From positions 62,001 to 126,000 of the IMG/VR virus record IMGVR_UViG_3300023174_000039: DNA of 64,000 nt. The stretch is one strand, 5' to 3'. Positions within the stretch are counted from its first letter, which is position 1, and each line of letters begins with the position of its first letter. Both the position numbers and the translations under genes were made by a program. This document shows, in pieces, positions 22,007 through 54,732 of the stretch. Below the pieces are notes generated by a model. That model was not told the DNA's origin, did no database searches, and worked only from the letters and a program-made list of their open reading frames with translations.

Positions 22007-23197
22007 ATGAAATCAACTGAAAATATCAGCACCTGCAGTTTTTGCAACAAACACAAAGATGCAGTAACCAAACTTATTGTAGGTGAAGAAGTTGCAATTT
22101 GCAACGAATGCGTGGACTTGTGCCAAACATTATTGGTAGATCAACCTGAGGCAAAATCCGAAGAAGCTAGTCTTGACCCTAGAGAGATTAAAAATCATCT
22201 TGACCAATATGTAATTGGGCAGGACAATGCCAAGGTCATGCTGAGTGTGGCCATTGCCAACCACTACAAACGCATTAGAAACAAAGATGTCAACACTGAA
22301 ATTGAAAAAGCCAACATTCTCATGCTTGGCCCCACAGGTTCGGGCAAAACATTGTTGGCTCGCACAGTGGCACGTTACCTAGATGTACCATTTGTGATTG
22401 CCGATGCTACTAGTCTAACCGAAGCAGGTTATGTGGGCGATGATGTGGAAAGTTTGATCAGTCGCTTGTATGCTGCCGCTGGGGGAGATGTTGAAAAAAC
22501 ACAACGCGGTATTGTGTTTGTAGACGAAATTGATAAAATCAGCCGCAAAAGCGAAAGCACCAGTATCACACGAGATGTATCCGGTGAAGGCGTACAGCAA
22601 GCCTTGTTAAAACTAGTAGAAGGCACCAAGTGTCGCATCGTGCCACAAGGTGGCCGCAAACATCCAGGCGGCGACAACATAGAAATTGACACACGCAACA
22701 TTTTGTTCATTGCCGGTGGCGCATTTGTTGGGCTAGACAACATTGTTAAAAGTCGTGTTCAAGGCACAGGCATTGGGTTTGGTGCAGAAGTAAACAGCAA
22801 AACAGCCGGAGATCTACACATTGACAAAACCACTCCTGACGATCTTGTGAGATTTGGACTTATTCCTGAGTTTGTGGGAAGGTTTCCTGCTTGGGTCGCA
22901 CTACGAGAACTAGACAAAAAAGATCTTGTGAGAATCCTTAAAGATGTCAAACATAACTATGTGAGTCAATATCAATGGTTGTTCAAACAGGACAATGTTG
23001 AACTTGAATTTACATCTGACAGCTTGGAGTTGATTGCAGAACGCACACTCAAAAACAAAACAGGCGCACGTGGATTACACAGTGAACTAGAGCGTGTGCT
23101 AATGCCACACATGTACAACCTAACACGCTATCGTACCAGCGGCATTAGCCATGTGGACATTGATCAGAATTTGGTAAATATTCCCAAGGAGCTTTAA
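22007..23197 (+). CDS. clpX: ATP-dependent Clp protease ATP-binding subunit ClpX
   Basis: C4 zinc finger, [23 protein letters not shown] loop, TGARGL. Confidence 0.97.
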
Positions 23198-39756: not shown

Positions 39757-40443
39757 TTATGCTGATTTTTTAATTACCGCTTGAACAAGGCTGTCTATGC
39801 TGTTCACAATGGGCACACCTTGTTCACTAGCAATACCGATGCTTAGGGGCAATTCAGTACAGCCCAGCACAATAGCTTGAGCTCCATGTGTGATCAGGCT
39901 GTGAATCACCTGCATCAGCAATACCTGAGATTCCCCAATCTTGCCAGCCTTGATAAAGTCAATTGCAGGTTGTACAAAAAAGTCCATTTCAGCACGGTCA
40001 GGAACAATACATTTCCATCCCTGTTGCTCTAGTTTGTGTTGATAGATACCGTTGTCTATTGTGCCTTGTGTGCCCATGATGCCAATGGTGGTGTTGGCAA
40101 GTCCTAGTTCACGCAGTTGATCTGCTATGCTGTCCACTATGTGAGTGATGGGCACACCCATTTTTGCCATGTCATCATACCAATAGTGTGCAGAGTTGCA
40201 AGGGATCACAACATGATCACAGCCCACAGTTTTCAGTGCCTGTATGCCCTGCAACAACCACAGCATGGGTTGATTGTCACCGGCTTGCATGGCTCGGCTA
40301 CGGTCAGGTATTCTTGGCTCGTTCCACAACACAAAAGGTATGTGTTCTTGATCGGTTGTGGCAGGCGTTTGTTTTATGAGTCTAGTCACAAACTCTGCTG
40401 ATGCCGCAGGACCCATGCCACCTAGTATGCCCAATCGTTTCAT
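39757..40443 (-). CDS. aspartate/glutamate racemase
   Basis: MKRLGILGGMGP, PDR, IPCNSAH, LGCTELP (two catalytic Cys). Confidence 0.93.
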   Translation of the reverse strand: MKRLGILGGMGPAASAEFVTRLIKQTPATTDQEHIPFVLWNEPRIPDRSRAMQAGDNQPMLWLLQGIQALKTVGCDHVVIPCNSAHYWYDDMAKMGVPITHIVDSIADQLRELGLANTTIGIMGTQGTIDNGIYQHKLEQQGWKCIVPDRAEMDFFVQPAIDFIKAGKIGESQVLLMQVIHSLITHGAQAIVLGCTELPLSIGIASEQGVPIVNSIDSLVQAVIKKSA

Positions 40444-41219
40444 ACTTTGCTGTGTTGCAACAACAACACAGTGTTGTTGTGTTGATTGGGATGAAAATCT
40501 CTGCGCATGAAGCTCAACCAAGGTCCGACCAACCCAGTCACAAATCCATTTTTCCAGTTGAACAACACAATCACAGCATCTTTTGCTGTGCGCCATTTCC
40601 ACAGTTGACGATCTGCACGTAGCAACACCAGGGTATTTCTGGCAATATCCCACACAAAGTTTGCAGTGGTCAACAGCATGCTGAGTCGCAGTTTACCGCC
40701 GCCAATGGCGTTGATAGTGTCCATGGCAACTGCTTTGTGTTCTATTTCTTCCACAGCATGCCAAGTCCACAACTGACGAAAGTGAGGATGCATGCTGTCC
40801 AACAGTTCAGGATGTGTCAACAAGTGTTCGGCAAAGATGGCAGTGATGTGCTCTAGACTCACTGTGCTGGCCAGTTGACCTTTTTTGCTGATTTTGGTTT
40901 TGATGTATTCTAGTTTGGCCAGTGCCAGTGCTTCCAAACGTTCAGCAGGCAAGCCTTGCTTGGTCAGCCAAAGATTGTATTGTTGGTGAGCATAACGATG
41001 CCAGTTTTCTTGTTTGACAAATGTGGCAATTGCTTGTTGTTGGTCAGCATCGGTGATTCTGTGTTGATAGTTTTTCACGCTGTCAATAAAGAAACGTTCA
41101 CCATGTGGGAATGTGATGCTCAAGGCATTTAAAAAATGTGTTTTGAACGCACTGTTATCAAAATAGTATTTTGGTAATTCCTGTGTCCAGTCTTGCTTTA
41201 GTGGTTGTTCTTTGAACAT
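40440..41219 (-). CDS. predicted metal-dependent hydrolase (PF10118-like, di-metal)
   Basis: NALS.TFP.GE.FFI, QE..H...H, LEH.TA, WHA.EE.EHK.VA, FHP. Confidence 0.85.
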   Translation of the reverse strand: MFKEQPLKQDWTQELPKYYFDNSAFKTHFLNALSITFPHGERFFIDSVKNYQHRITDADQQQAIATFVKQENWHRYAHQQYNLWLTKQGLPAERLEALALAKLEYIKTKISKKGQLASTVSLEHITAIFAEHLLTHPELLDSMHPHFRQLWTWHAVEEIEHKAVAMDTINAIGGGKLRLSMLLTTANFVWDIARNTLVLLRADRQLWKWRTAKDAVIVLFNWKNGFVTGLVGPWLSFMRRDFHPNQHNNTVLLLQHSKV

Positions 41220-41224
41220 ATTAG

Positions 41225-42133
41225 TTAGAAGGTAATTGATCCTGACCCCACAGTGGTCCACTTGTACACTCTATAGCCACCGGCAACTGTGACAGTTGGG
41301 CTACCAGTAGTGGCAGTTGCGGCTGCATATGAGTCTGGGTAACGAATGATCACGATACCTGATCCGCCACCTGCGCCAGACCCGTCGTTTCCCGGAGTCC
41401 CGCCGCCTGAGCCACCGCCGCCTCCACCAGTGTTTGGAGTTCCGGCAGTTGCAGTGGTTGCTCCTGTTGCTCCTGCACCACCGCCACCTGCACCACCAGA
41501 TCCAGCTGTACCACTGCCACCGCCACCAGCGTATCCACCGCCACCACCGCCACCTGCATAGGTTACAGATGTTCCAGATATTGAACTTGCTGTGCCTCCT
41601 CCACCATTTCCACCATTAGCTCCAGCATTGCCACCAACCGCACTGGCGCCGCCACCGCCACCAGCATGATAAGGAGGAGAAGTTGAACCTGATCCCCCGG
41701 AATTTCCTTGGCTTCCTGTCCCAGAACCACCCGATCCCGGCGCCGACACGCCGTACCCACCACCGCCACCAGATCCACCTGTTCCGCCGCCACTGGTACT
41801 ACTGGTATATGAATACGCACCGGCGCCACCACCAATAGATGTTATAGTGCTAAAAATAGAATCACCACCAGATGCACCTGCTTGTGTGCTTGAGTTTGGT
41901 GCGCCACCTGCGCCAACAGTGACCGTGATGGGTGTACCACTGGCTACTGCAAATCCTGTTGCGGTTCTAAATCCACCTGCACCCCCGCCCCCGCCATGTC
42001 GTGTACCACCTGCCCCGCCACCGCCAACCACAAGATATTCAACTGTGGGCGTAACTGACGGGCCACCACCTGTGGTATCGCCAATGGCCCATGCACCTGT
42101 AATTGCCCATCCGGGCCCGATTGTGAATCCCAT
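41225..42133 (-). CDS. glycine-rich domain virion/fibre protein
   Basis: VEYLVVGGGG, NTGGGGGG, GGSGIVIIRY; shares the N-terminal IGPGW motif. Confidence 0.75.
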   Translation of the reverse strand: MGFTIGPGWAITGAWAIGDTTGGGPSVTPTVEYLVVGGGGAGGTRHGGGGGAGGFRTATGFAVASGTPITVTVGAGGAPNSSTQAGASGGDSIFSTITSIGGGAGAYSYTSSTSGGGTGGSGGGGGYGVSAPGSGGSGTGSQGNSGGSGSTSPPYHAGGGGGASAVGGNAGANGGNGGGGTASSISGTSVTYAGGGGGGGYAGGGGSGTAGSGGAGGGGAGATGATTATAGTPNTGGGGGGSGGGTPGNDGSGAGGGSGIVIIRYPDSYAAATATTGSPTVTVAGGYRVYKWTTVGSGSITF

Positions 42134-42158
42134 GCTTGTGTCCTTATTAGACTCTTAT

Positions 42159-42761
42159 TTATTTTTTAAACAACAATGATGAAGCGATGACCAAGGCAGT
42201 CTGTGCAGCCTCTACGTCATCAGGCTGTTGTTTCCAACCCACGCTGATTTGTCCTATAAACACCCCGGGCTCGGCAGGCACACTGATACGGCACATGTAA
42301 TTCACACCGTTTTCTCTGTAGGCAAATCCAATTAGACTTTGTGGTTTGAGATAGGGACTGCACGGTATTTTACCAGACATGAGTCCAATCACATCATTGT
42401 TGTTGTCGTAGTTTTTGCTGAACAAGCCCACATCCAGGCCGTCGTACTGCTTGATTCTGCCACCATTGCGTGTGGACACAAACACAATTTTTCTTGTGTT
42501 TACCAGGGTATTGACCTCCATGATAGACACCAGTTCTACATCGGTGTTTTTCAACAAGAAATTGTAGGCTTCTTCATATCGGCCATTCATCTTGGGCAGG
42601 GCCTGTTGGGCACGATATGTGGCCATCATGGCATCTTTTTCGCTGTAAACAAACCAGCCCACAAAGCCCAGCACACACAGTAATATTACTGTGAATAATC
42701 TAAAAGGACTTTGCCCGATCCAGTTTAGTATTTCAAGCAGGGCTTCTTTGATCTTGTCCAT
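42159..42761 (-). CDS. single-TM protein with GAF-like periplasmic domain (T4 holin T-like?)
   Basis: N-terminal TM; C-terminal YMCRISVP....FIGQISVGW. Confidence 0.45.
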   Translation of the reverse strand: MDKIKEALLEILNWIGQSPFRLFTVILLCVLGFVGWFVYSEKDAMMATYRAQQALPKMNGRYEEAYNFLLKNTDVELVSIMEVNTLVNTRKIVFVSTRNGGRIKQYDGLDVGLFSKNYDNNNDVIGLMSGKIPCSPYLKPQSLIGFAYRENGVNYMCRISVPAEPGVFIGQISVGWKQQPDDVEAAQTALVIASSLLFKK

Positions 42762-44022
42762 GTGCCTGTTCTTTGTCACAAACAAATGCTGTCACTGCTA
42801 CGTTACCATGCACATGACTTGCTGTGCGAATCATGTCCATCAGAGGATCAACTGCAATCAACAGTACCAACACAGCTTCGCTGGGCAGTTTCAACAAGTC
42901 ACAAACAACTGCTACAGTGGCCACTGTGAGAATACCTGTTGTACCTGCTGATGCAAGCCCTGCCAAGATACTACCAAATAGCACAACTAGTAATCCTGTT
43001 AAGCCTAGTGGTGCATCATAAATGTTGGCAATGAATACTGTGGCAATGGCATAGTAAACGATACTACCAATGCGATTAACAGTGAAGCTGAGTGGCACAG
43101 TTAGTTCAACGCCGCCCTTGTCAAAGTGTAGTTTGTGCAGGGCTTCTTGTGCGTATGGGATACAGGCCAAACTTGAGCGTGAACTCACAGCAACAATCAG
43201 TGTTTCTTTGGTTTCTCGGATCACGGTAGCAAGGCTTAGACCTGAACGTGCCCAGATCACAGCAGTACCTGCCGCAACAACCAACACCCCCCCAACAAAC
43301 TGCTGGAACACAAAGTCAAACATGGTCATGAAGATGCCCACACCAACCTTGCCAACCTGCGATGAAATCATGGCCAACAGCGCAATTGGCAAGAAATAGT
43401 TTAGGAACTTGAAGATGCTGATACTGGCCTGTTGAATACTCTTTAGCACTTCCACCAACATCTTTTGACCTTCTGTTTTCAGGTGCCCCAGTGCCACACC
43501 AAAGATCAAACAAAAGATCACAATCTTTAAGCTCTCACCATTGTTTAGTGTGTTGAAGATGTTTTCAGGAATGAACTTTTCTGCCATCTTGCCTGCATTG
43601 ACAGGTGGTGCAACAGGCATGGGCTCGTGTAAAGTGATATTCAAATCAGTACCACTGTCTTTGTTGTTGACCAGCACACCCAGTTGTGTTTTCTTCTCTG
43701 GTGTCATTTCTGTACCTGTGACCAGCACAGTGCCCACACCAATCACAGCGGCCAGGAACATACTGCCCACAAAGCCAATGATGATTTTGCGTATCAATTC
43801 TTGACTGCCTTCTTTCTGCAGTAGGCCAATGATACCCACCAGGATAGTGGCCAACAAGAATGGTAACACAACAACTTTGAGCAGGCTGATGTAGATGCTG
43901 CCAATGCTGTCAAGACCTGTGCTGAACTCTGGAGCATACACACCAGCTAGAATGCCCACAATGATTGAACCAAGTATGGTCCAGGGGCTGATCAAAAATG
44001 TTTTTAAATGTGCAGTTGTCAT
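42733..44022 (-). CDS. dicarboxylate/amino acid:cation symporter (DAACS, GltP family)
   Basis: Multi-TM; IPENIF, SSRSS hairpin, D...DM.RT in TM8. Confidence 0.92.
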   Translation of the reverse strand: MTTAHLKTFLISPWTILGSIIVGILAGVYAPEFSTGLDSIGSIYISLLKVVVLPFLLATILVGIIGLLQKEGSQELIRKIIIGFVGSMFLAAVIGVGTVLVTGTEMTPEKKTQLGVLVNNKDSGTDLNITLHEPMPVAPPVNAGKMAEKFIPENIFNTLNNGESLKIVIFCLIFGVALGHLKTEGQKMLVEVLKSIQQASISIFKFLNYFLPIALLAMISSQVGKVGVGIFMTMFDFVFQQFVGGVLVVAAGTAVIWARSGLSLATVIRETKETLIVAVSSRSSLACIPYAQEALHKLHFDKGGVELTVPLSFTVNRIGSIVYYAIATVFIANIYDAPLGLTGLLVVLFGSILAGLASAGTTGILTVATVAVVCDLLKLPSEAVLVLLIAVDPLMDMIRTASHVHGNVAVTAFVCDKEQAHGQDQRSPA

Positions 44023-44031
44023 GGGGTGTCC

Positions 44032-44850
44032 TTATTTCTTTTCAGCTTTGTAGCGATCCATCAACTTCTTGGTGTCGATGTTGTTGTATTCATTTTTAAT
44101 CACGTAGTTGACCACGCTCAACAGTTGAATAGCCCGGGGATTCACTGCCACAGCAATGTTGTCTACACTGTCAGAGATGGTGATTGACTTGGTAGTAATT
44201 GCCGCATCTGGCTTTTCAAATGCAATTTTCTTGATTTCAAATTCATCACGGTAAGCGGCAGCGATGTCGCCACGTGTGACTTTGTCAATGATCACATCCC
44301 ACTTGTCTTCAGGCAGGAATTGTGCATTGGGAAAGTTAATTCTAGCAAATGTGTCATAACTGGAGTTGCGGATAAAACTTATCTTGCCGTTGAATTCTCT
44401 AATCACTTGATACACTTCTCTGCCCTGAGTATTCTGGCTCAACCATAGTCGATTCACAACTAAACTTTGGCGCAGTTTGATATAGGGATCACTGAATCTA
44501 ACTACTTGTAACCGTGGACCAGTTACGGATAGTTTACTAACAGCAATATCTGCTCTGCCATCTCTGACCTGTTCTACAACTTCTGCGAAGCTTTCTGCGT
44601 CTCGTCTAAACTGTACAGGAACTCCAAGTAACACCCCAATGCGTCGAGCGATCTCAACGTCAAGGCCGTGTATGGTATCCTCGTCTCCGGAAAAGAATGG
44701 AGGATTGTCTTTTTTGGTCATTGCCACCACAAGCACATTGGCTTTTTTGATTGCGGCAATATCTGCGGGTAGTGGTACAGTTGATGTTGGTAACTGTGCA
44801 GAAGCAACAGTGGCCAACACAAGTAATACGGTGGCGAATAGTTTTTTCAT
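44032..44850 (-). CDS. periplasmic amino-acid substrate-binding protein (SBP family 3)
   Basis: Signal peptide; NPPF, GLDVEIA, ADIAVS.LS.T..R...V.FSDPY. Confidence 0.92.
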   Translation of the reverse strand: MKKLFATVLLVLATVASAQLPTSTVPLPADIAAIKKANVLVVAMTKKDNPPFFSGDEDTIHGLDVEIARRIGVLLGVPVQFRRDAESFAEVVEQVRDGRADIAVSKLSVTGPRLQVVRFSDPYIKLRQSLVVNRLWLSQNTQGREVYQVIREFNGKISFIRNSSYDTFARINFPNAQFLPEDKWDVIIDKVTRGDIAAAYRDEFEIKKIAFEKPDAAITTKSITISDSVDNIAVAVNPRAIQLLSVVNYVIKNEYNNIDTKKLMDRYKAEKK

Positions 44851-44911
44851 TTGTATGTGTCCATAATGTAGGTATTTAATACCCAACGTTATTTATGTTT
44901 TTAGATGTTAC

Positions 44912-44940
44912 AAAAAAAAGTCCCTTGCGGGACTCTTTTT
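44912..44940. terminator. bidirectional-type terminator hairpin
   Basis: A-tract, AGTCCC-TTGC-GGGACT, T-tract. Confidence 0.8.
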
Positions 44941-45208
44941 ATTTTGCCGCTGGCTTGGGTGCTTTTGGCTTGGGTTCTGCTTTGGGTTTTGCAGGTGCCC
45001 GGGGTTTTGGTGTTGCCTTGGGTTTTGCAGGTGCTTTGGGGACAGGAGCGGCAATTGTTGCCTCAGTCCCTGCTGGCACAACTTCAACCTTGGTTTCAAC
45101 CACGGGTGCTGATTCAACCTTGGTTTCAGGTGCTGGTGCTTCGACTTTGTATGGTGCTTCGGGAATTGAAGGCTTGCCAAACAAGAATTCTTTGATTTTT
45201 GCTAACAT
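44939..45208 (-). CDS. Pro/Ala/Lys-rich small protein
   Basis: SD AGGAG and TAAATA upstream; KAPAKPK repeats. Confidence 0.7.
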   Translation of the reverse strand: MLAKIKEFLFGKPSIPEAPYKVEAPAPETKVESAPVVETKVEVVPAGTEATIAAPVPKAPAKPKATPKPRAPAKPKAEPKPKAPKPAAK

Positions 45209-45266
45209 AATGTTCTCCTATACAATTATTTATTAGTGATTGTTCACTAGAAAAAATTAAGATAAT

Positions 45267-45297
45267 TGTTGCAGTGCAAGGTAAATAATGTTACAAT
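45267..45297 (+). promoter_or_regulatory. PhaR-like box overlapping sigma70 and late promoters
   Basis: TGTTGCAGTGCAA; TTGCAG-17-TACAAT; TAAATA at 45282. Confidence 0.6.
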
Positions 45298-45302
45298 AGA
45301 AC

Positions 45303-45353
45303 ATAGGGTGCTGAATAGGTCGGGCCTTATAGTAAACTCGCTTAAATTAGGAG
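45303..45353 (+). promoter_or_regulatory. ROSE-like leader similar to the hsp20 leader
   Basis: Hairpin with TGC.GA...GGTCGGG; CTCGCTT opposite AGGAG. Confidence 0.55.
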
Positions 45354-45359
45354 AAAATT

Positions 45360-45635
45360 ATGTTTACATTAGACGCAACAATCGACGCCGTTCAAACCGG
45401 TAAAAAACAATTTGTCAAGACATTTGTGCAAAACGAAAAAATTGCCGACGCAATGAACACTTTCATTGATGAGCAAGCCGCTTACACAAAGAAAGCTGCC
45501 AAAGTTGGCACAGACACATTTGCCACTTTGACCAGCGAAATGGTCAAAGCTTCACAAGAAGCCATGAAGTTTGACTACACCAAGTTTGGTGAAGGTATCA
45601 TGAAGGCCTACTCTGCTACTACTTCTAAAAAGTAA
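45360..45635 (+). CDS. phasin-like protein
   Basis: Small amphipathic helical Ala/Lys/Thr-rich protein preceded by a PhaR-like box. Confidence 0.55.
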   Translation: MFTLDATIDAVQTGKKQFVKTFVQNEKIADAMNTFIDEQAAYTKKAAKVGTDTFATLTSEMVKASQEAMKFDYTKFGEGIMKAYSATTSKK

Positions 45636-45659
45636 TTGCCCTGTACTTTTAACAAGTAC

Positions 45660-45710
45660 TTGACATCTAATCCGGTTCGTGCTATAATAACGCATGTACC
45701 GGATTTTTTT
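45660..45710 (+). promoter_or_regulatory. consensus sigma70 promoter overlapping an intrinsic terminator
   Basis: TTGACA-17-TATAAT with the -10 in the loop of AATCCGGT..GC / GC..ACCGGATT-TTTT. Confidence 0.8.
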
Positions 45711-45721
45711 ATGGAGCAATT

Positions 45722-45874
45722 GTGAAACCTATAACTTTTGTATTACAAATACCCAGACTGCGTAGACGTGCTGTGGAGTTGTATAGCCGCGACACCCCGT
45801 TCAAATCACGTGCAGAAAAATCTAAAATAGTGTACAATCGCAAGATCAAACATCGCAACAAGGACAAAACATAA
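45722..45874 (+). CDS. ArfA-like (alternative ribosome rescue factor-like) small basic protein, not in ORF track
   Basis: GTG start, SD GGAG; DTPFKSRAEKSKIVYNRKIKHRN. Confidence 0.55.
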   Translation: MKPITFVLQIPRLRRRAVELYSRDTPFKSRAEKSKIVYNRKIKHRNKDKT

Positions 45875-48036: not shown

Positions 48037-48081
48037 GTAATTATCTAAGCAGTTTATTGTTTAGATAATCATTTGTACATT

Positions 48082-48654
48082 ATGGCACTAGATACTACCA
48101 CAACCGAAAACTCTCACAGTCAAGACCTAGCCGATAACGGCATGTATGTTTTCATGGGCGAAGTAGACAATGAAAGCATCCGACCCATTATTGAATGGAT
48201 CTTGCACGAAAACTTTGTTGTAAAGAAAAAGCGCAAAGAACTCCTGCTGATGATCTGTAGTGAGGGTGGCGATATGAGTGCCGCCTTTGCCTTAATAGAT
48301 GTGATGAAGAGTTCCAACATCTTTATTAAAACCGTGGGCCTGGGGCAAATTGCATCAGCAGGCCTGTTGATCTTTCTAGCAGGATCACCGGGACGCAGAA
48401 CACTCACACCTAATACTTCAATCATGAGTCATCAATATGCCTGGGGCAGTGACGGAAAACATCATGAGTTGTTGGCTACCATTAGAGAATTTGAACTCAC
48501 GCAACGTCGCATGGTTCAGCATTACATAACCTGTACAGGATTGAGTGAAGAAGATATCAAGCAACACCTGTTGCCACCACATGATGTTTACTTGAGTGCC
48601 GAAGATGCCCTGAGACTAGGCATCTGTGATCATATCAGCCAGCTGGCTCGTTAA
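48082..48654 (+). CDS. ClpP-like protease (divergent)
   Basis: ICSEGG, GQIASAG (Ser), MSHQ (His), HDVYLSAE.A..LGICD. Confidence 0.88.
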   Translation: MALDTTTTENSHSQDLADNGMYVFMGEVDNESIRPIIEWILHENFVVKKKRKELLLMICSEGGDMSAAFALIDVMKSSNIFIKTVGLGQIASAGLLIFLAGSPGRRTLTPNTSIMSHQYAWGSDGKHHELLATIREFELTQRRMVQHYITCTGLSEEDIKQHLLPPHDVYLSAEDALRLGICDHISQLAR

Positions 48655-50943: not shown

Positions 50944-52106
50944 TGTTTTTTTCAATCACACACCACCCTGACACAAATTTTTCACATCAATGGCACAGCC
51001 CATCTCTAGTTGTCAACACTGACGCAGGATGGAATCATGTTGTGATTGATGATCAAATGGTGGTGTACAAAGGTTATGCTGAATCGGGTGTGTTGATTGA
51101 TCTGTTGCCACAAATACTGCAACAGTCTGAGCCAATGATGTTGGGCAATTTTTGTGCAATTGTGATTGGTAAAGATACATTAAAAATCAAAACAGACAGG
51201 TATCGTAGTTTTCCAATCTGGGTCAATGCCGGCAAAGAAATTACCAATTTGCAGGCATTGTCTCACACTGTGTGGACTGACATATACATTGAGTCAGATT
51301 TGGATCTAAACATTGTTCAGCACAAGTTCAATGTGATTGGCAAAATTGACACCACCCCAATTTCTGAATCAGATGCCTTGGAGCAGATAGATCAAATATT
51401 GCTGACTCGCACTGCTGACTTTGTCAAGTACAACACTCTGCCCATACGTTCTTTTCTAACAGGCGGGGTTGATTCGTTGCTGGTGTACAGTTATCTTGTG
51501 AGAGTCGGTGCACCAGTTGAAGTAATAGATTACTTGCATATTGACTATGATCACTTTTGGAAATCAAACTCTCATTATCTAAAAAAGTTCTGGGGGTACA
51601 GTCAGATACATCACTGGAACGACCCCACAGTTCTTGCCAGCGGCGCACCTGGTGATGAGTTTATGTTGCGCAGTCCCACAACTGCGTCAATGTATTTGCA
51701 GTTTCACCAATTGAACATGACGGATCTGTTGGAGGCCAATCCCACCTGTTTGCATTACTCGTATTTTAATCAAGCCAAAAATCTTGATGCCATACGACGA
51801 CCTTATGCTGTGACACGTCCGCAACAAATGGCCTGGGATATATGCAACATCCTGGTGAATGATTGGCAGCACTGGCACATTGGCAATACTTTGACCTGGA
51901 CCTTGTTGCGTGACATTGAAGTACTAAAACTATTGCTTAGAGTACCGGTAGAATCTGCTGTTGGTCAGATTCTCAACAGTGATCTTTCAAACCAGCTGAC
52001 TGAACGTAATCTTCCAGGGTCAACTGTTTGGATCAGTGACCAAAAGAACACAGGTGCTATGCGGAAAAATCTAACACGCCCGCTAAAAATTCGCAATGAT
52101 CTTTGA
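50943..52106 (+). CDS. asparagine synthetase-like (Ntn + PP-loop) protein
   Basis: GNFCAI, D.YRSFP, FLTGGVDS, GAPGDE. Confidence 0.7.
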   Translation: MFFSITHHPDTNFSHQWHSPSLVVNTDAGWNHVVIDDQMVVYKGYAESGVLIDLLPQILQQSEPMMLGNFCAIVIGKDTLKIKTDRYRSFPIWVNAGKEITNLQALSHTVWTDIYIESDLDLNIVQHKFNVIGKIDTTPISESDALEQIDQILLTRTADFVKYNTLPIRSFLTGGVDSLLVYSYLVRVGAPVEVIDYLHIDYDHFWKSNSHYLKKFWGYSQIHHWNDPTVLASGAPGDEFMLRSPTTASMYLQFHQLNMTDLLEANPTCLHYSYFNQAKNLDAIRRPYAVTRPQQMAWDICNILVNDWQHWHIGNTLTWTLLRDIEVLKLLLRVPVESAVGQILNSDLSNQLTERNLPGSTVWISDQKNTGAMRKNLTRPLKIRNDL

Positions 52107-53184
52107 CAGACACATGTTTTACTTGATCCATCCGGCTCACAAATTCCGTTAGCGTCTGATGACTTGGCTGGTCCCACGGGTATGTTTTTAAATTTGCAAT
52201 GATGGACCGTAATGCATTGATAGCATTGCTTTTTTGATCTGGCAGTATATCAGCCTTTAAAAGTTGTACACATGCTTGATACAGTTTTTGAATCACTACA
52301 TCTCTTTGAGCAACAGGCACAACACCTTCCAACAGGTGCGGCGCCCCTGGACTGCCAAACGTTACCACACTGGGCCAATTCTGCGCCAACAGCTCTATCA
52401 CTTGATCCAGATGATAATAGTTGTAGATTGAAGTTGTGATGTTTACCCGCAAACTTATCTTGGGATTGGCTCTTGCTTGTTCAAAGTTTTTCAACACCAC
52501 AGGCCAGTTGGTGCCAAATCTCACATACTCTGCTGCCTTGCCCACAGCGTCAATGCTGAACACCATGGTGATCTTGCCGGCATAACTTTCTACCCATGCC
52601 CAATCCACTGTGCTGCCATTGGTAAACATTGTGATATTGCTGTGTAGGTTTGCATGTGCCCAGGCCAGAAACTGTTTGCAATTGGGATCATAAAACGGTT
52701 CTCCACCCAACAACACCACGTCCCGTATGCGGTCAGCAATGGGCAACAAAAAATCAAAGTTGTCTATTCGAGTGCTGTTGATAGATTTTATATCGATCAA
52801 TCCGGCCTGTGCATGATGCTGGCTCACACGGCTACTGGCTTCGGGCCAACAAGTTTGACAGCTGAAGTTGCACACATTGCCTGGGCGTATCTCCAGGGTA
52901 ATATCGTCATTGGCATAGTGAGCATAGGCATGTTCGCCACCCAGCCGAGTGCTGTCGTTGCGTTGCTGAAGTTCTCTACGCTCACAACGAGTGCAGGCCG
53001 CGGGCCACACACCATTGGCCAACTGCTGTTCAAATGGGATATTTTGTTGATGCCAAGTTGTCAGATTTACTTGACTGATGTGATTTTGGGTTGAGTAATT
53101 GGAATCCTGCTGCCATTCGCAACAGGGTTTGACCACATGGTCATAACTGATAGCCAGGCCATGCTTTAGAAATTTACATTGCAT
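52057..53184 (-). CDS. radical SAM protein with twitch/SPASM-like N-terminus
   Basis: PCC, C..C, CNFSCQTC, LGGEPF, TNG, SID....YVR.G..W. Confidence 0.9.
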   Translation of the reverse strand: MQCKFLKHGLAISYDHVVKPCCEWQQDSNYSTQNHISQVNLTTWHQQNIPFEQQLANGVWPAACTRCERRELQQRNDSTRLGGEHAYAHYANDDITLEIRPGNVCNFSCQTCWPEASSRVSQHHAQAGLIDIKSINSTRIDNFDFLLPIADRIRDVVLLGGEPFYDPNCKQFLAWAHANLHSNITMFTNGSTVDWAWVESYAGKITMVFSIDAVGKAAEYVRFGTNWPVVLKNFEQARANPKISLRVNITTSIYNYYHLDQVIELLAQNWPSVVTFGSPGAPHLLEGVVPVAQRDVVIQKLYQACVQLLKADILPDQKSNAINALRSIIANLKTYPWDQPSHQTLTEFVSRMDQVKHVSVKDHCEFLAGVLDFSA

Positions 53185-53397: not shown

Positions 53398-53502
53398 TTA
53401 TTTCCAATAATTGTACTTGCTGGCAGGGCTCTGACGATACTGGTGAATCATTTCGGCCCAGTTGATTAGACCTTGGTAAATTGTGTTGATGATGTTTTTC
53501 AT
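53398..53502 (-). CDS. 34-aa micro-protein
   Basis: MKNIINTIYQGLINWAEMIHQYRQ...; SD AAGGA, ATGA overlap. Confidence 0.55.
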   Translation of the reverse strand: MKNIINTIYQGLINWAEMIHQYRQSPASKYNYWK

Positions 53503-53666
53503 AGATAGCTTTCCTTTTGAGAGTTAAATTGCTTAATGTAGTTTTCAAGCTGGGCGGCATCGGTAATGCCTTTAGTGCTTAGATATGCATCCAAGCGGCT
53601 TTGGTAATCAGATCCCGGAAACATTTCACCTAAACGTTCCAGTAATCGTGCTATGGTTTGTGTCAT
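53499..53666 (-). CDS. 55-aa DUF3563-like protein
   Basis: RLDAYLS.K...DAAQLENYIKQF; SD AAGGA; TAAATA upstream. Confidence 0.55.
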   Translation of the reverse strand: MTQTIARLLERLGEMFPGSDYQSRLDAYLSTKGITDAAQLENYIKQFNSQKESYL

Positions 53667-53685: not shown

Positions 53686-53715
53686 TATTTACCATTAGAG
53701 TCTGTTGCACTGCAA
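53686..53715 (-). promoter_or_regulatory. PhaR-like box plus late TAAATA promoter
   Basis: TTGCAGTGCAACA on the minus strand, 11 nt upstream of TAAATA. Confidence 0.6.
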
Positions 53716-53745
53716 AAAACTAGTGGTTTTCACTGATTTTTATCA

Positions 53746-53781
53746 GTTGACCATTAAATCACAATTTGCTATAATACTTGT
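53746..53781 (+). promoter_or_regulatory. early promoter cassette, copy 3 (leaderless variant)
   Basis: TTGACC-17-TATAAT-ACTTGT-ATG. Confidence 0.85.
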
Positions 53782-54192
53782 ATGCTATATTTTTCTTATG
53801 GAATGAACACAAATCAGGCCGAAATGGCCGCACGGTGCCCAGGCGCTCAGGCGCTAGGACATGCCCGTTTGATTGATCATGTGTTTCGGTTTGCTACTCA
53901 TGCTGATGTTGTAAAATGTCGCGGGTCTTTTGTGGACGGAGTACTGTGGGAAATCAACAACAGTGATTTGCGAGCTCTTGACAGCCTTGAAGGCTTCCCT
54001 TACTATTACAATCGTCGTGCTCTAAGAGTGGCGTTTGAGGGCAGGACTGTGTTGGCCGAAACTTACTACATGCAACCGGGGCACTTGGACTCAGAACCCA
54101 GCCGTGGTTATTTTGCAACAGTTTTAGAGGGCTATCGTCAGCACAATATACCCCTGGATCAGCTGTACAACAGCATGGAAATCTTTGGTTGA
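53782..54192 (+). CDS. gamma-glutamylcyclotransferase (AIG2/GGCT-like)
   Basis: YFSYGMN, RCP, GVLW, LD.LEG. Confidence 0.88.
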   Translation: MLYFSYGMNTNQAEMAARCPGAQALGHARLIDHVFRFATHADVVKCRGSFVDGVLWEINNSDLRALDSLEGFPYYYNRRALRVAFEGRTVLAETYYMQPGHLDSEPSRGYFATVLEGYRQHNIPLDQLYNSMEIFG

Positions 54193-54650: not shown

Positions 54651-54732
54651 TGTTGTTTTTTTGCAACACACAAAAAGGTTGACCAAAATATCCCAATTTG
54701 CTATAATACTTGTATAGTAATTAAAAAGGAGT
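54651..54732 (+). promoter_or_regulatory. early promoter cassette, copy 5, with upstream TGT-N12-ACA palindrome
   Basis: TGTTG-N8-CAACA; TTGACC(54679)-17-TATAAT(54702). Confidence 0.9.

Follow-up and report, generated by a model that had tools for sequence, protein, structure and literature searches.

RESULTS

A small-gene locus in a jumbo phage genome

The DNA analyzed here (the window) is a stretch of 64,000 nucleotides comprising bases 62001 to 126000 of the 331,654-bp IMG/VR virus record IMGVR_UViG_3300023174_000039, which has 44% G+C and a CheckV completeness of 95%. The record encodes a T4-type major capsid protein (Pfam Gp23, E 1e-97) and a large terminase, and the capsid protein is 61 to 66% identical to those of jumbo myoviruses such as Pseudomonas phage PA5oct, Sinorhizobium phage Phosso, and Xanthomonas phage XaC1. 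The possibility that the record is a chromosome fragment was therefore rejected, and its earlier description as a phage is correct; the phage is a 332-kb myovirus. In addition to the features listed in Table 1, the window carries ribonucleotide reductase, DNA ligase, and UvdE. Rfam and tRNA scans of the window were empty, and a literature search for the host of this clade gave no answer.

Table 1. Features of the window around the two PhaR-type boxes and their surroundings (window coordinates)
Position	Strand	Feature	Observations
22007-23197 and 48073-48654		ClpX and ClpP, both encoded by the phage	ClpP stays linked to the 91-aa gene even in distant relatives
39757-44886	-	Island of host-like genes: Asp/Glu racemase, glycine-rich protein, sodium:dicarboxylate symporter, family-3 solute-binding protein	Symporter and binding protein about 93% identical in related phages
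44939-45208	-	Divergent 89-aa gene; conserved N terminus (MLxKIKEFLFGKP...APYKVE) and Lys/Ala/Pro-rich histone-like tail	A K/A/P-rich divergent ORF with the same N-terminal motif lies 120-190 nt upstream of the 91-aa gene in most related loci; no Pfam or PHROG match; Atlas neighbors all viral
45227-45234	-	AATAAATA, just before the RBS of the K/A/P-rich gene	Looks like a T4 late promoter; TATAAATA is not enriched genome-wide (15 copies)
45234-45249		Second conserved palindrome, TAGTGA-N4-TCACTA (type B)	Conserved in many related loci; in the whole genome only here and beside the second box (53722-53734, AGTGG-TTT-TCACT)
45266-45282		PhaR-type box, TTGTTGC-AGT-GCAAGGT; TGTTGCAGTGCAA at 45267-45279, core TGC-N3-GCA at 45270-45278	Left arm fits the consensus, right arm degenerate; 11.4 bits on the host-derived matrix
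45269-45297	+	Predicted promoter: TTGCAG (45269-45274), 17-nt spacer, TACAAT (45292-45297); TG at 45289-45290	Extended -10; TAAATA (45282-45287) inside the spacer
45281-45288	+	ATAAATA-like element	With 45227-45234 (-), may be a T4-type late promoter on each side
45303-45330	+	Stem-loop at the 5' end of the predicted transcript, conserved loop ATAGG/ATGGG	11 pairs, 91.6% of cells paired, 8 pairs with compensatory changes
45331-45359	+	Conserved leader AGTAAACTCGCTTAA and Shine-Dalgarno AGGAGA (45349-45354)
45360-45635	+	91-aa protein, predicted three-helix (PHL)	Hallmark of a family found almost only on phage contigs; Phasin_2 only sub-threshold
45643-45712	+	Two hairpins and a T-run: intrinsic terminator	-26.7 kcal/mol, z -4.3
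45660-45688	+	TTGACA-17-TATAAT promoter for the next small gene	12 of 12 consensus matches; inside the terminator hairpin of the 91-aa gene
45722-45874		50-aa basic gene
52057-53184	-	Radical-SAM protein	Flanks the second box region
53499-53666	-	55-aa gene behind the second box, weakly DUF3563-like	235 related stretches in viral contigs
53702-53718		Second PhaR-type box, CTGTTGC-ACT-GCAAAAA	19.7 bits, best site in the 332-kb genome; intergenic, 36 nt before the start codon at 53666
53747-53776 and 54685-54713		Near-consensus promoters	With 45660-45688, recurrent form TTGAC(A/C), 14 nt, TGCTATAAT; probably early promoters
53782-54192	+	Gamma-glutamyl cyclotransferase-like gene	Flanks the second box region

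A sequence-only reading had placed a TGC-N3-GCA-type operator over the -35 of a TTGCAG-17-TACAAT promoter, next to TAAATA and upstream of a gene for a small amphipathic protein. Inspection of the sequence confirmed this observation, as each of these elements lies where it had been described. Two refinements can be made: TTGCAG matches TTGACA at only 3 of 6 positions, such that a consensus promoter scan did not list this promoter, whereas a TG one base before TACAAT (TGTTACAAT) makes it an extended -10. On its own, however, the motif is not beyond chance, as TGNTGCNNNGCAA occurs twice in the window against 1.7 expected, and TGC-N3-GCA occurs 101 times in the 331,654-bp genome.

Conservation of the palindrome upstream of PHL

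To assess whether the motif is maintained, relatives of the 91-aa protein, here called PHL, were collected. The family comprises 997 clusters at 90% identity and 174 representatives at 50% identity, and 95 IMG/VR loci were found, many of them on contigs of 260 to 364 kb. Only two short metagenome-assembled genome (MAG) contigs were found among 185,579 species genomes, and tblastn found no homologue in cultured phages. A profile search of a 5.8-billion protein set gave 1380 hits, and none of the 120 listed has a Pfam domain. Odd long hits of the search for representatives (entries P0159, P0190, and others) are low-complexity artifacts.

Alignment of the upstream regions showed that the regulatory DNA is conserved better than the protein, and consists of a palindrome, a -10 element, a stem-loop, a leader, and a strong ribosome site. 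Of 67 non-redundant related phage loci, at least 52 carry an N3 palindrome at the same place, with the consensus WTGTTGC-RNY-GCAACAW. T is at position 2 in 51 of 52 sites, G at position 3 in 45, and purine at position 8 and pyrimidine at position 10 in 50 each. The -10 element is also conserved, and the center of the box lies 18 to 19 bp before it in 44 of 49 loci. Relatives whose protein is only 33 to 34% identical still have the box, the hairpin, and the ClpP neighbor. In 478 kb of related phage DNA, 43 of the 48 matches to the strict pattern TKNTGCRNYGCANMA lie at this one promoter. The copy in the window has GCAAGG instead of GCAACA in its right arm and scores only 11.4 bits, against about 20 bits in most relatives.

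Four lineages lost the palindrome but kept the -10 and the hairpin; it is therefore a regulatory add-on and not a core promoter part. The palindrome as an RNA hairpin or terminator was considered and rejected, as it is unstable as a hairpin (-1.8 kcal/mol) and has no T-run. This favors recognition as double-stranded DNA, and symmetry reaching the central base is what a dimeric DNA-binding protein would select.

The 5' stem-loop was supported by covariation, as sliding the partner by one column dropped pairing to 51% or less; it is probably an mRNA stabilizer or a protein-binding site. Both divergent genes have an ATAAATA-like element, and 23 nt of their leaders form an imperfect inverted repeat. 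Contigs of three metatranscriptomes (two labeled freshwater and one marine) cover the PHL gene more deeply than its flanks, although this is weak evidence for expression, since the gene is also more conserved than its flanks.

Comparison with PhaR sites of host genomes

To evaluate whether the palindrome resembles PhaR operators, it was compared with experimentally defined sites: TG-N-TGC-N3-GCAA for Herbaspirillum seropedicae PhbF, with a DNase footprint; YTKNTGCRNYGCANMAR for Ralstonia eutropha PhaR; and TGCRNYGCASMA for Bradyrhizobium diazoefficiens PhaR, with footprints, where the phaP4 site overlaps the -35. The phage consensus fits all informative positions, including the T and G/T of the flank and the purine and pyrimidine at the two ends of the spacer, features that the sequence-only reading had not used. 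The window copy fits the Herbaspirillum motif exactly, although against the flanks and spacer of the defined sites together (T-K-N before TGC, R-N-Y, N-M-A after GCA) only its left arm and spacer fit.

We next examined 81 genomes sampled from the order (Burkholderiales) of a Polynucleobacter MAG, of which 54 have Phasin_2 genes and 57 have PhaR. Of 30 phasin genes, 27 have TGC-N3-GCA boxes within 220 nt upstream (51 sites), against 44 of 316 control windows. N3 spacing dominates, with 51 sites against 2 with N4, and the low-GC Polynucleobacter-like MAG uses the same TGTTGC...GCAACA flavor before one of its phasin genes. A matrix built from these host boxes scores 13 bits or more at the expected place in about 50 of 65 phage promoters, but in only 5 of 1658 windows of the phage genome. 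Upstream regions of six host phaR genes were also inspected; only one had a strong box, so this control is uninformative. The phage itself has no PHB_acc_N (PhaR) domain and no PhaC_N.

A second box precedes a DUF3563-like gene

The best-scoring site in the phage genome lies before a 55-aa gene whose only Pfam similarity is DUF3563 (PF12086), at 14.9 bits against a cut-off of 26.9 (E 0.026), colinear over 5-48. A profile comparison (hhalign) with host DUF3563 gave E 0.0057 at a probability of 6%, over the AYL...D..LE core. In host genomes, 8 of 13 DUF3563 loci (L205 to L217 of our collection) have a box of 17 bits or more just upstream, against 1 of 171 control windows. Thus, two phage genes behind the box each point, weakly but independently, to a host family whose members carry PhaR boxes. 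DUF3563, a family without known function, is accordingly predicted to belong to the PhaR regulon of Burkholderiales; a literature search found no paper that mentions it. In two relatives (L013, position 5855; L014, position 4715), a PhaR-type box (TTTTGC-AAC-GCACAA) lies about 60 nt before the homologue of the 50-aa basic gene that follows PHL in the window.

Variant spacings and a second palindrome type

The same half-sites one base further apart (N4; for example, TTGTGC-GATT-GCACAA) were found in 8 of 67 PHL promoters and in 24 of 44 promoters of the 55-aa family (L011, L013, L029, L054, L067, L071, L073, L083, and many of L124 to L203). One phage (L013) has N4 at PHL and N3 before another gene. 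The N4 palindrome is not enriched in the 81 host genomes, where 4 genomes have a match against 7 for the control pattern. A search for the 55-aa gene in five relatives with N4 boxes was unsuccessful; the records are fragments. The type B palindrome takes the place of the box before the 55-aa gene in close relatives.

The PHL protein and its divergent neighbor

AlphaFold2 predicts three helices for PHL (residues 2-22, 26-70, and 73-89) at pLDDT 87, with moderate hydrophobic moments of 0.26 to 0.41; a small amphipathic all-helical character is thus predicted, but is not specific to phasins. Phasin_2 (PF09361) is the only family that recurs. The window protein scores 16.1 bits against a gathering cut-off of 24.9 (residues 25-85 to profile positions 29-90), and none of 61 family members gave a significant hit, although 18 matched at E 0.1 or better (best 8e-4) and one Atlas neighbor cluster carries the tag. 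The search against phasins that had been proposed as a check was negative at the profile level, as hhalign of the phage family against 30 Burkholderiales phasins gave a probability of 2.6%. A profile search of solved structures found only designed helical bundles, and Foldseek against AlphaFold clusters and PDB and an Atlas shape search returned only generic helical hairpins; one phasin-domain entry at rank 30 carries no meaning. NCBIfam and PHROGs gave nothing useful. We therefore do not classify PHL as a phasin, and that it works like one is a hypothesis resting on its regulation and general character.

In relatives, the tail of the divergent gene contains literal PAKK and AKKP repeats, and some carry a Cys-rich insertion (CGCGRS..G.CVGLHKL) between the N terminus and the tail. 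Such tails attach PhaM and PhaF to the nucleoid, but searches with the N-terminal part detected no relative, and this similarity is a lead rather than evidence.

DISCUSSION

Taken together, these data are best explained by a PhaR-type operator centered about 30 bp before the start of a promoter with a weak -35 and an extended -10, which would drive a small, strongly expressed phage gene. As the phage encodes no PhaR, the box would be read by the PhaR of the host, which would sit on the -35 region and block RNA polymerase in cells that are not making PHB. Nascent granules would titrate PhaR away in cells storing carbon, and the gene would then be switched on. The transcript would begin with the conserved stem-loop, and its product, proposed to act on the granule surface as a phasin does, is the weakest step of this model. 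In this view, the box belongs to a small phage set of PhaR-boxed genes that also includes the DUF3563-like 55-aa gene and, in some relatives, the small basic gene downstream. We consider control by host PhaR probable, at roughly 0.6. What the analysis establishes is the sequence, its conservation, and its likeness to host boxes, whereas PhaR binding, repression, titration by granules, and granule binding by the protein are inferred. The interpretation offered by the sequence-only reading, that the phage senses host carbon storage and coats or mobilizes PHB granules, is thus partly supported: its operator half is well supported, its phasin half is only a lead, and an action on granules is inference with no direct evidence.

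Other readings remain. The palindrome may instead be the operator of a phage-encoded regulator or of another host factor, sharing half-sites with PhaR boxes by convergence or chance, within a phage-specific set of interchangeable modules (N3, N4, type B) placed before TAAATA/TATAAT promoters of small conserved genes. The frequency of N4 versions in relatives, their scarcity at host phasin genes, the phage with both spacings, and the replacement of the box by type B palindromes in the closest relatives are consistent with this view, and most phage operators are read by phage proteins. However, the half-sites, including the R/Y spacer ends, agree with PhaR sites by roughly 11 bits (our estimate from the consensus positions), two independent target genes point to host families with PhaR boxes, only two sites exist in 332 kb, and no candidate regulator was found next to either site. 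We regard this alternative as unlikely but still possible. Far less likely is a phage-specific core promoter in which the box substitutes for the -35 and is read by modified RNA polymerase, as at T4 middle or late promoters, with the adjacent ATAAATA as the real -10. The T4-type capsid, the conservation of ATAAATA or CTAAATAC beside the palindrome in this and the 55-aa family promoters, and the AATAAATA of the divergent gene could fit such a promoter, which host PhaR might not control. Yet a promoter class would give dozens of boxes where only two good ones occur, four lineages dispensed with the box, the symmetry reaching the center is typical of a dimeric site, and TATAAATA is not enriched, its 15 copies comparing with about 25 expected from base composition by our estimate. 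A dual early/late promoter also remains possible.

It is also conceivable, though doubtful, that PhaR controls the promoter while the product is not a granule-surface protein but any abundant small helical protein, for example, a partner of the phage ClpP/ClpX or a nucleoid or virion protein, whose synthesis is merely tied to the carbon state of the host. The lack of significant homology to phasins, the conserved synteny with ClpP, and the many non-phasin genes in bacterial PhaR regulons support this, whereas the recurrence of Phasin_2 as the single weak hit and the PAKKA-like tail of the divergent partner speak against it. At the other extreme, a widespread clade of freshwater jumbo phages may carry a set of its own genes wired to PhaR, comprising a phasin-like protein, a protein with a PhaM-like tail, and a DUF3563-like protein, with which the phage detects growing PHB granules in the infected cell and remodels or taps them. 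This speculative and rather unlikely reading would make it the first virus known to sense and manipulate a bacterial carbon-storage organelle.

PHB granules are a major carbon and reducing-power reserve of many freshwater and soil bacteria, and full-text literature searches found no report of a phage phasin or of a PhaR-controlled phage gene. If host PhaR reads these boxes, a common group of giant freshwater phages (about 1000 protein clusters at 90% identity) ties part of its program to the storage state of the cell, which would affect how infection outcome depends on nutrient status.

The closest known counterparts are the PhaR (PhbF, AniA) operators at phasin promoters of H. seropedicae, Cupriavidus necator (R. 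eutropha), and B. diazoefficiens. The phage box shares their core, their flanks (T, G/T before the core; A/C, A after it), and the purine/pyrimidine ends of the spacer, overlaps the predicted -35 as at B. diazoefficiens phaP4, and precedes a gene for a small, predicted helical protein. It differs in lying in a virus without phaR, phaC, or a recognizable phasin, in usually being single where host phasin promoters often have two boxes about 55 bp apart, and in having N4 variants that are hardly seen in hosts. Compared with Phasin_2 phasins such as PhaP1, PHL is likewise small, Ala/Lys/Thr-rich, predicted to be all-helical, possibly highly expressed, and behind a PhaR-type box, with a weak colinear Pfam match; it is, however, half their length (91 aa against 175 to 200), below the gathering cut-off, negative in profile-profile comparison, and found almost only on phage contigs. 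The divergent gene shares a Lys/Ala/Pro repeat tail with PhaM of C. necator and PhaF of Pseudomonas putida, which are granule-to-nucleoid tethers, but its N-terminal part (APYKVE motif) has no detected similarity to either, and such tails also occur in unrelated DNA-binding proteins. Host-regulator boxes are kept in front of phage auxiliary genes elsewhere, such as Pho boxes before cyanophage pstS and NtcA sites in cyanophages, where a lytic phage wires its own genes to a host nutrient-status regulator that it does not encode; here, the signal would instead be the state of a storage organelle, the PHB granule, read through PhaR.
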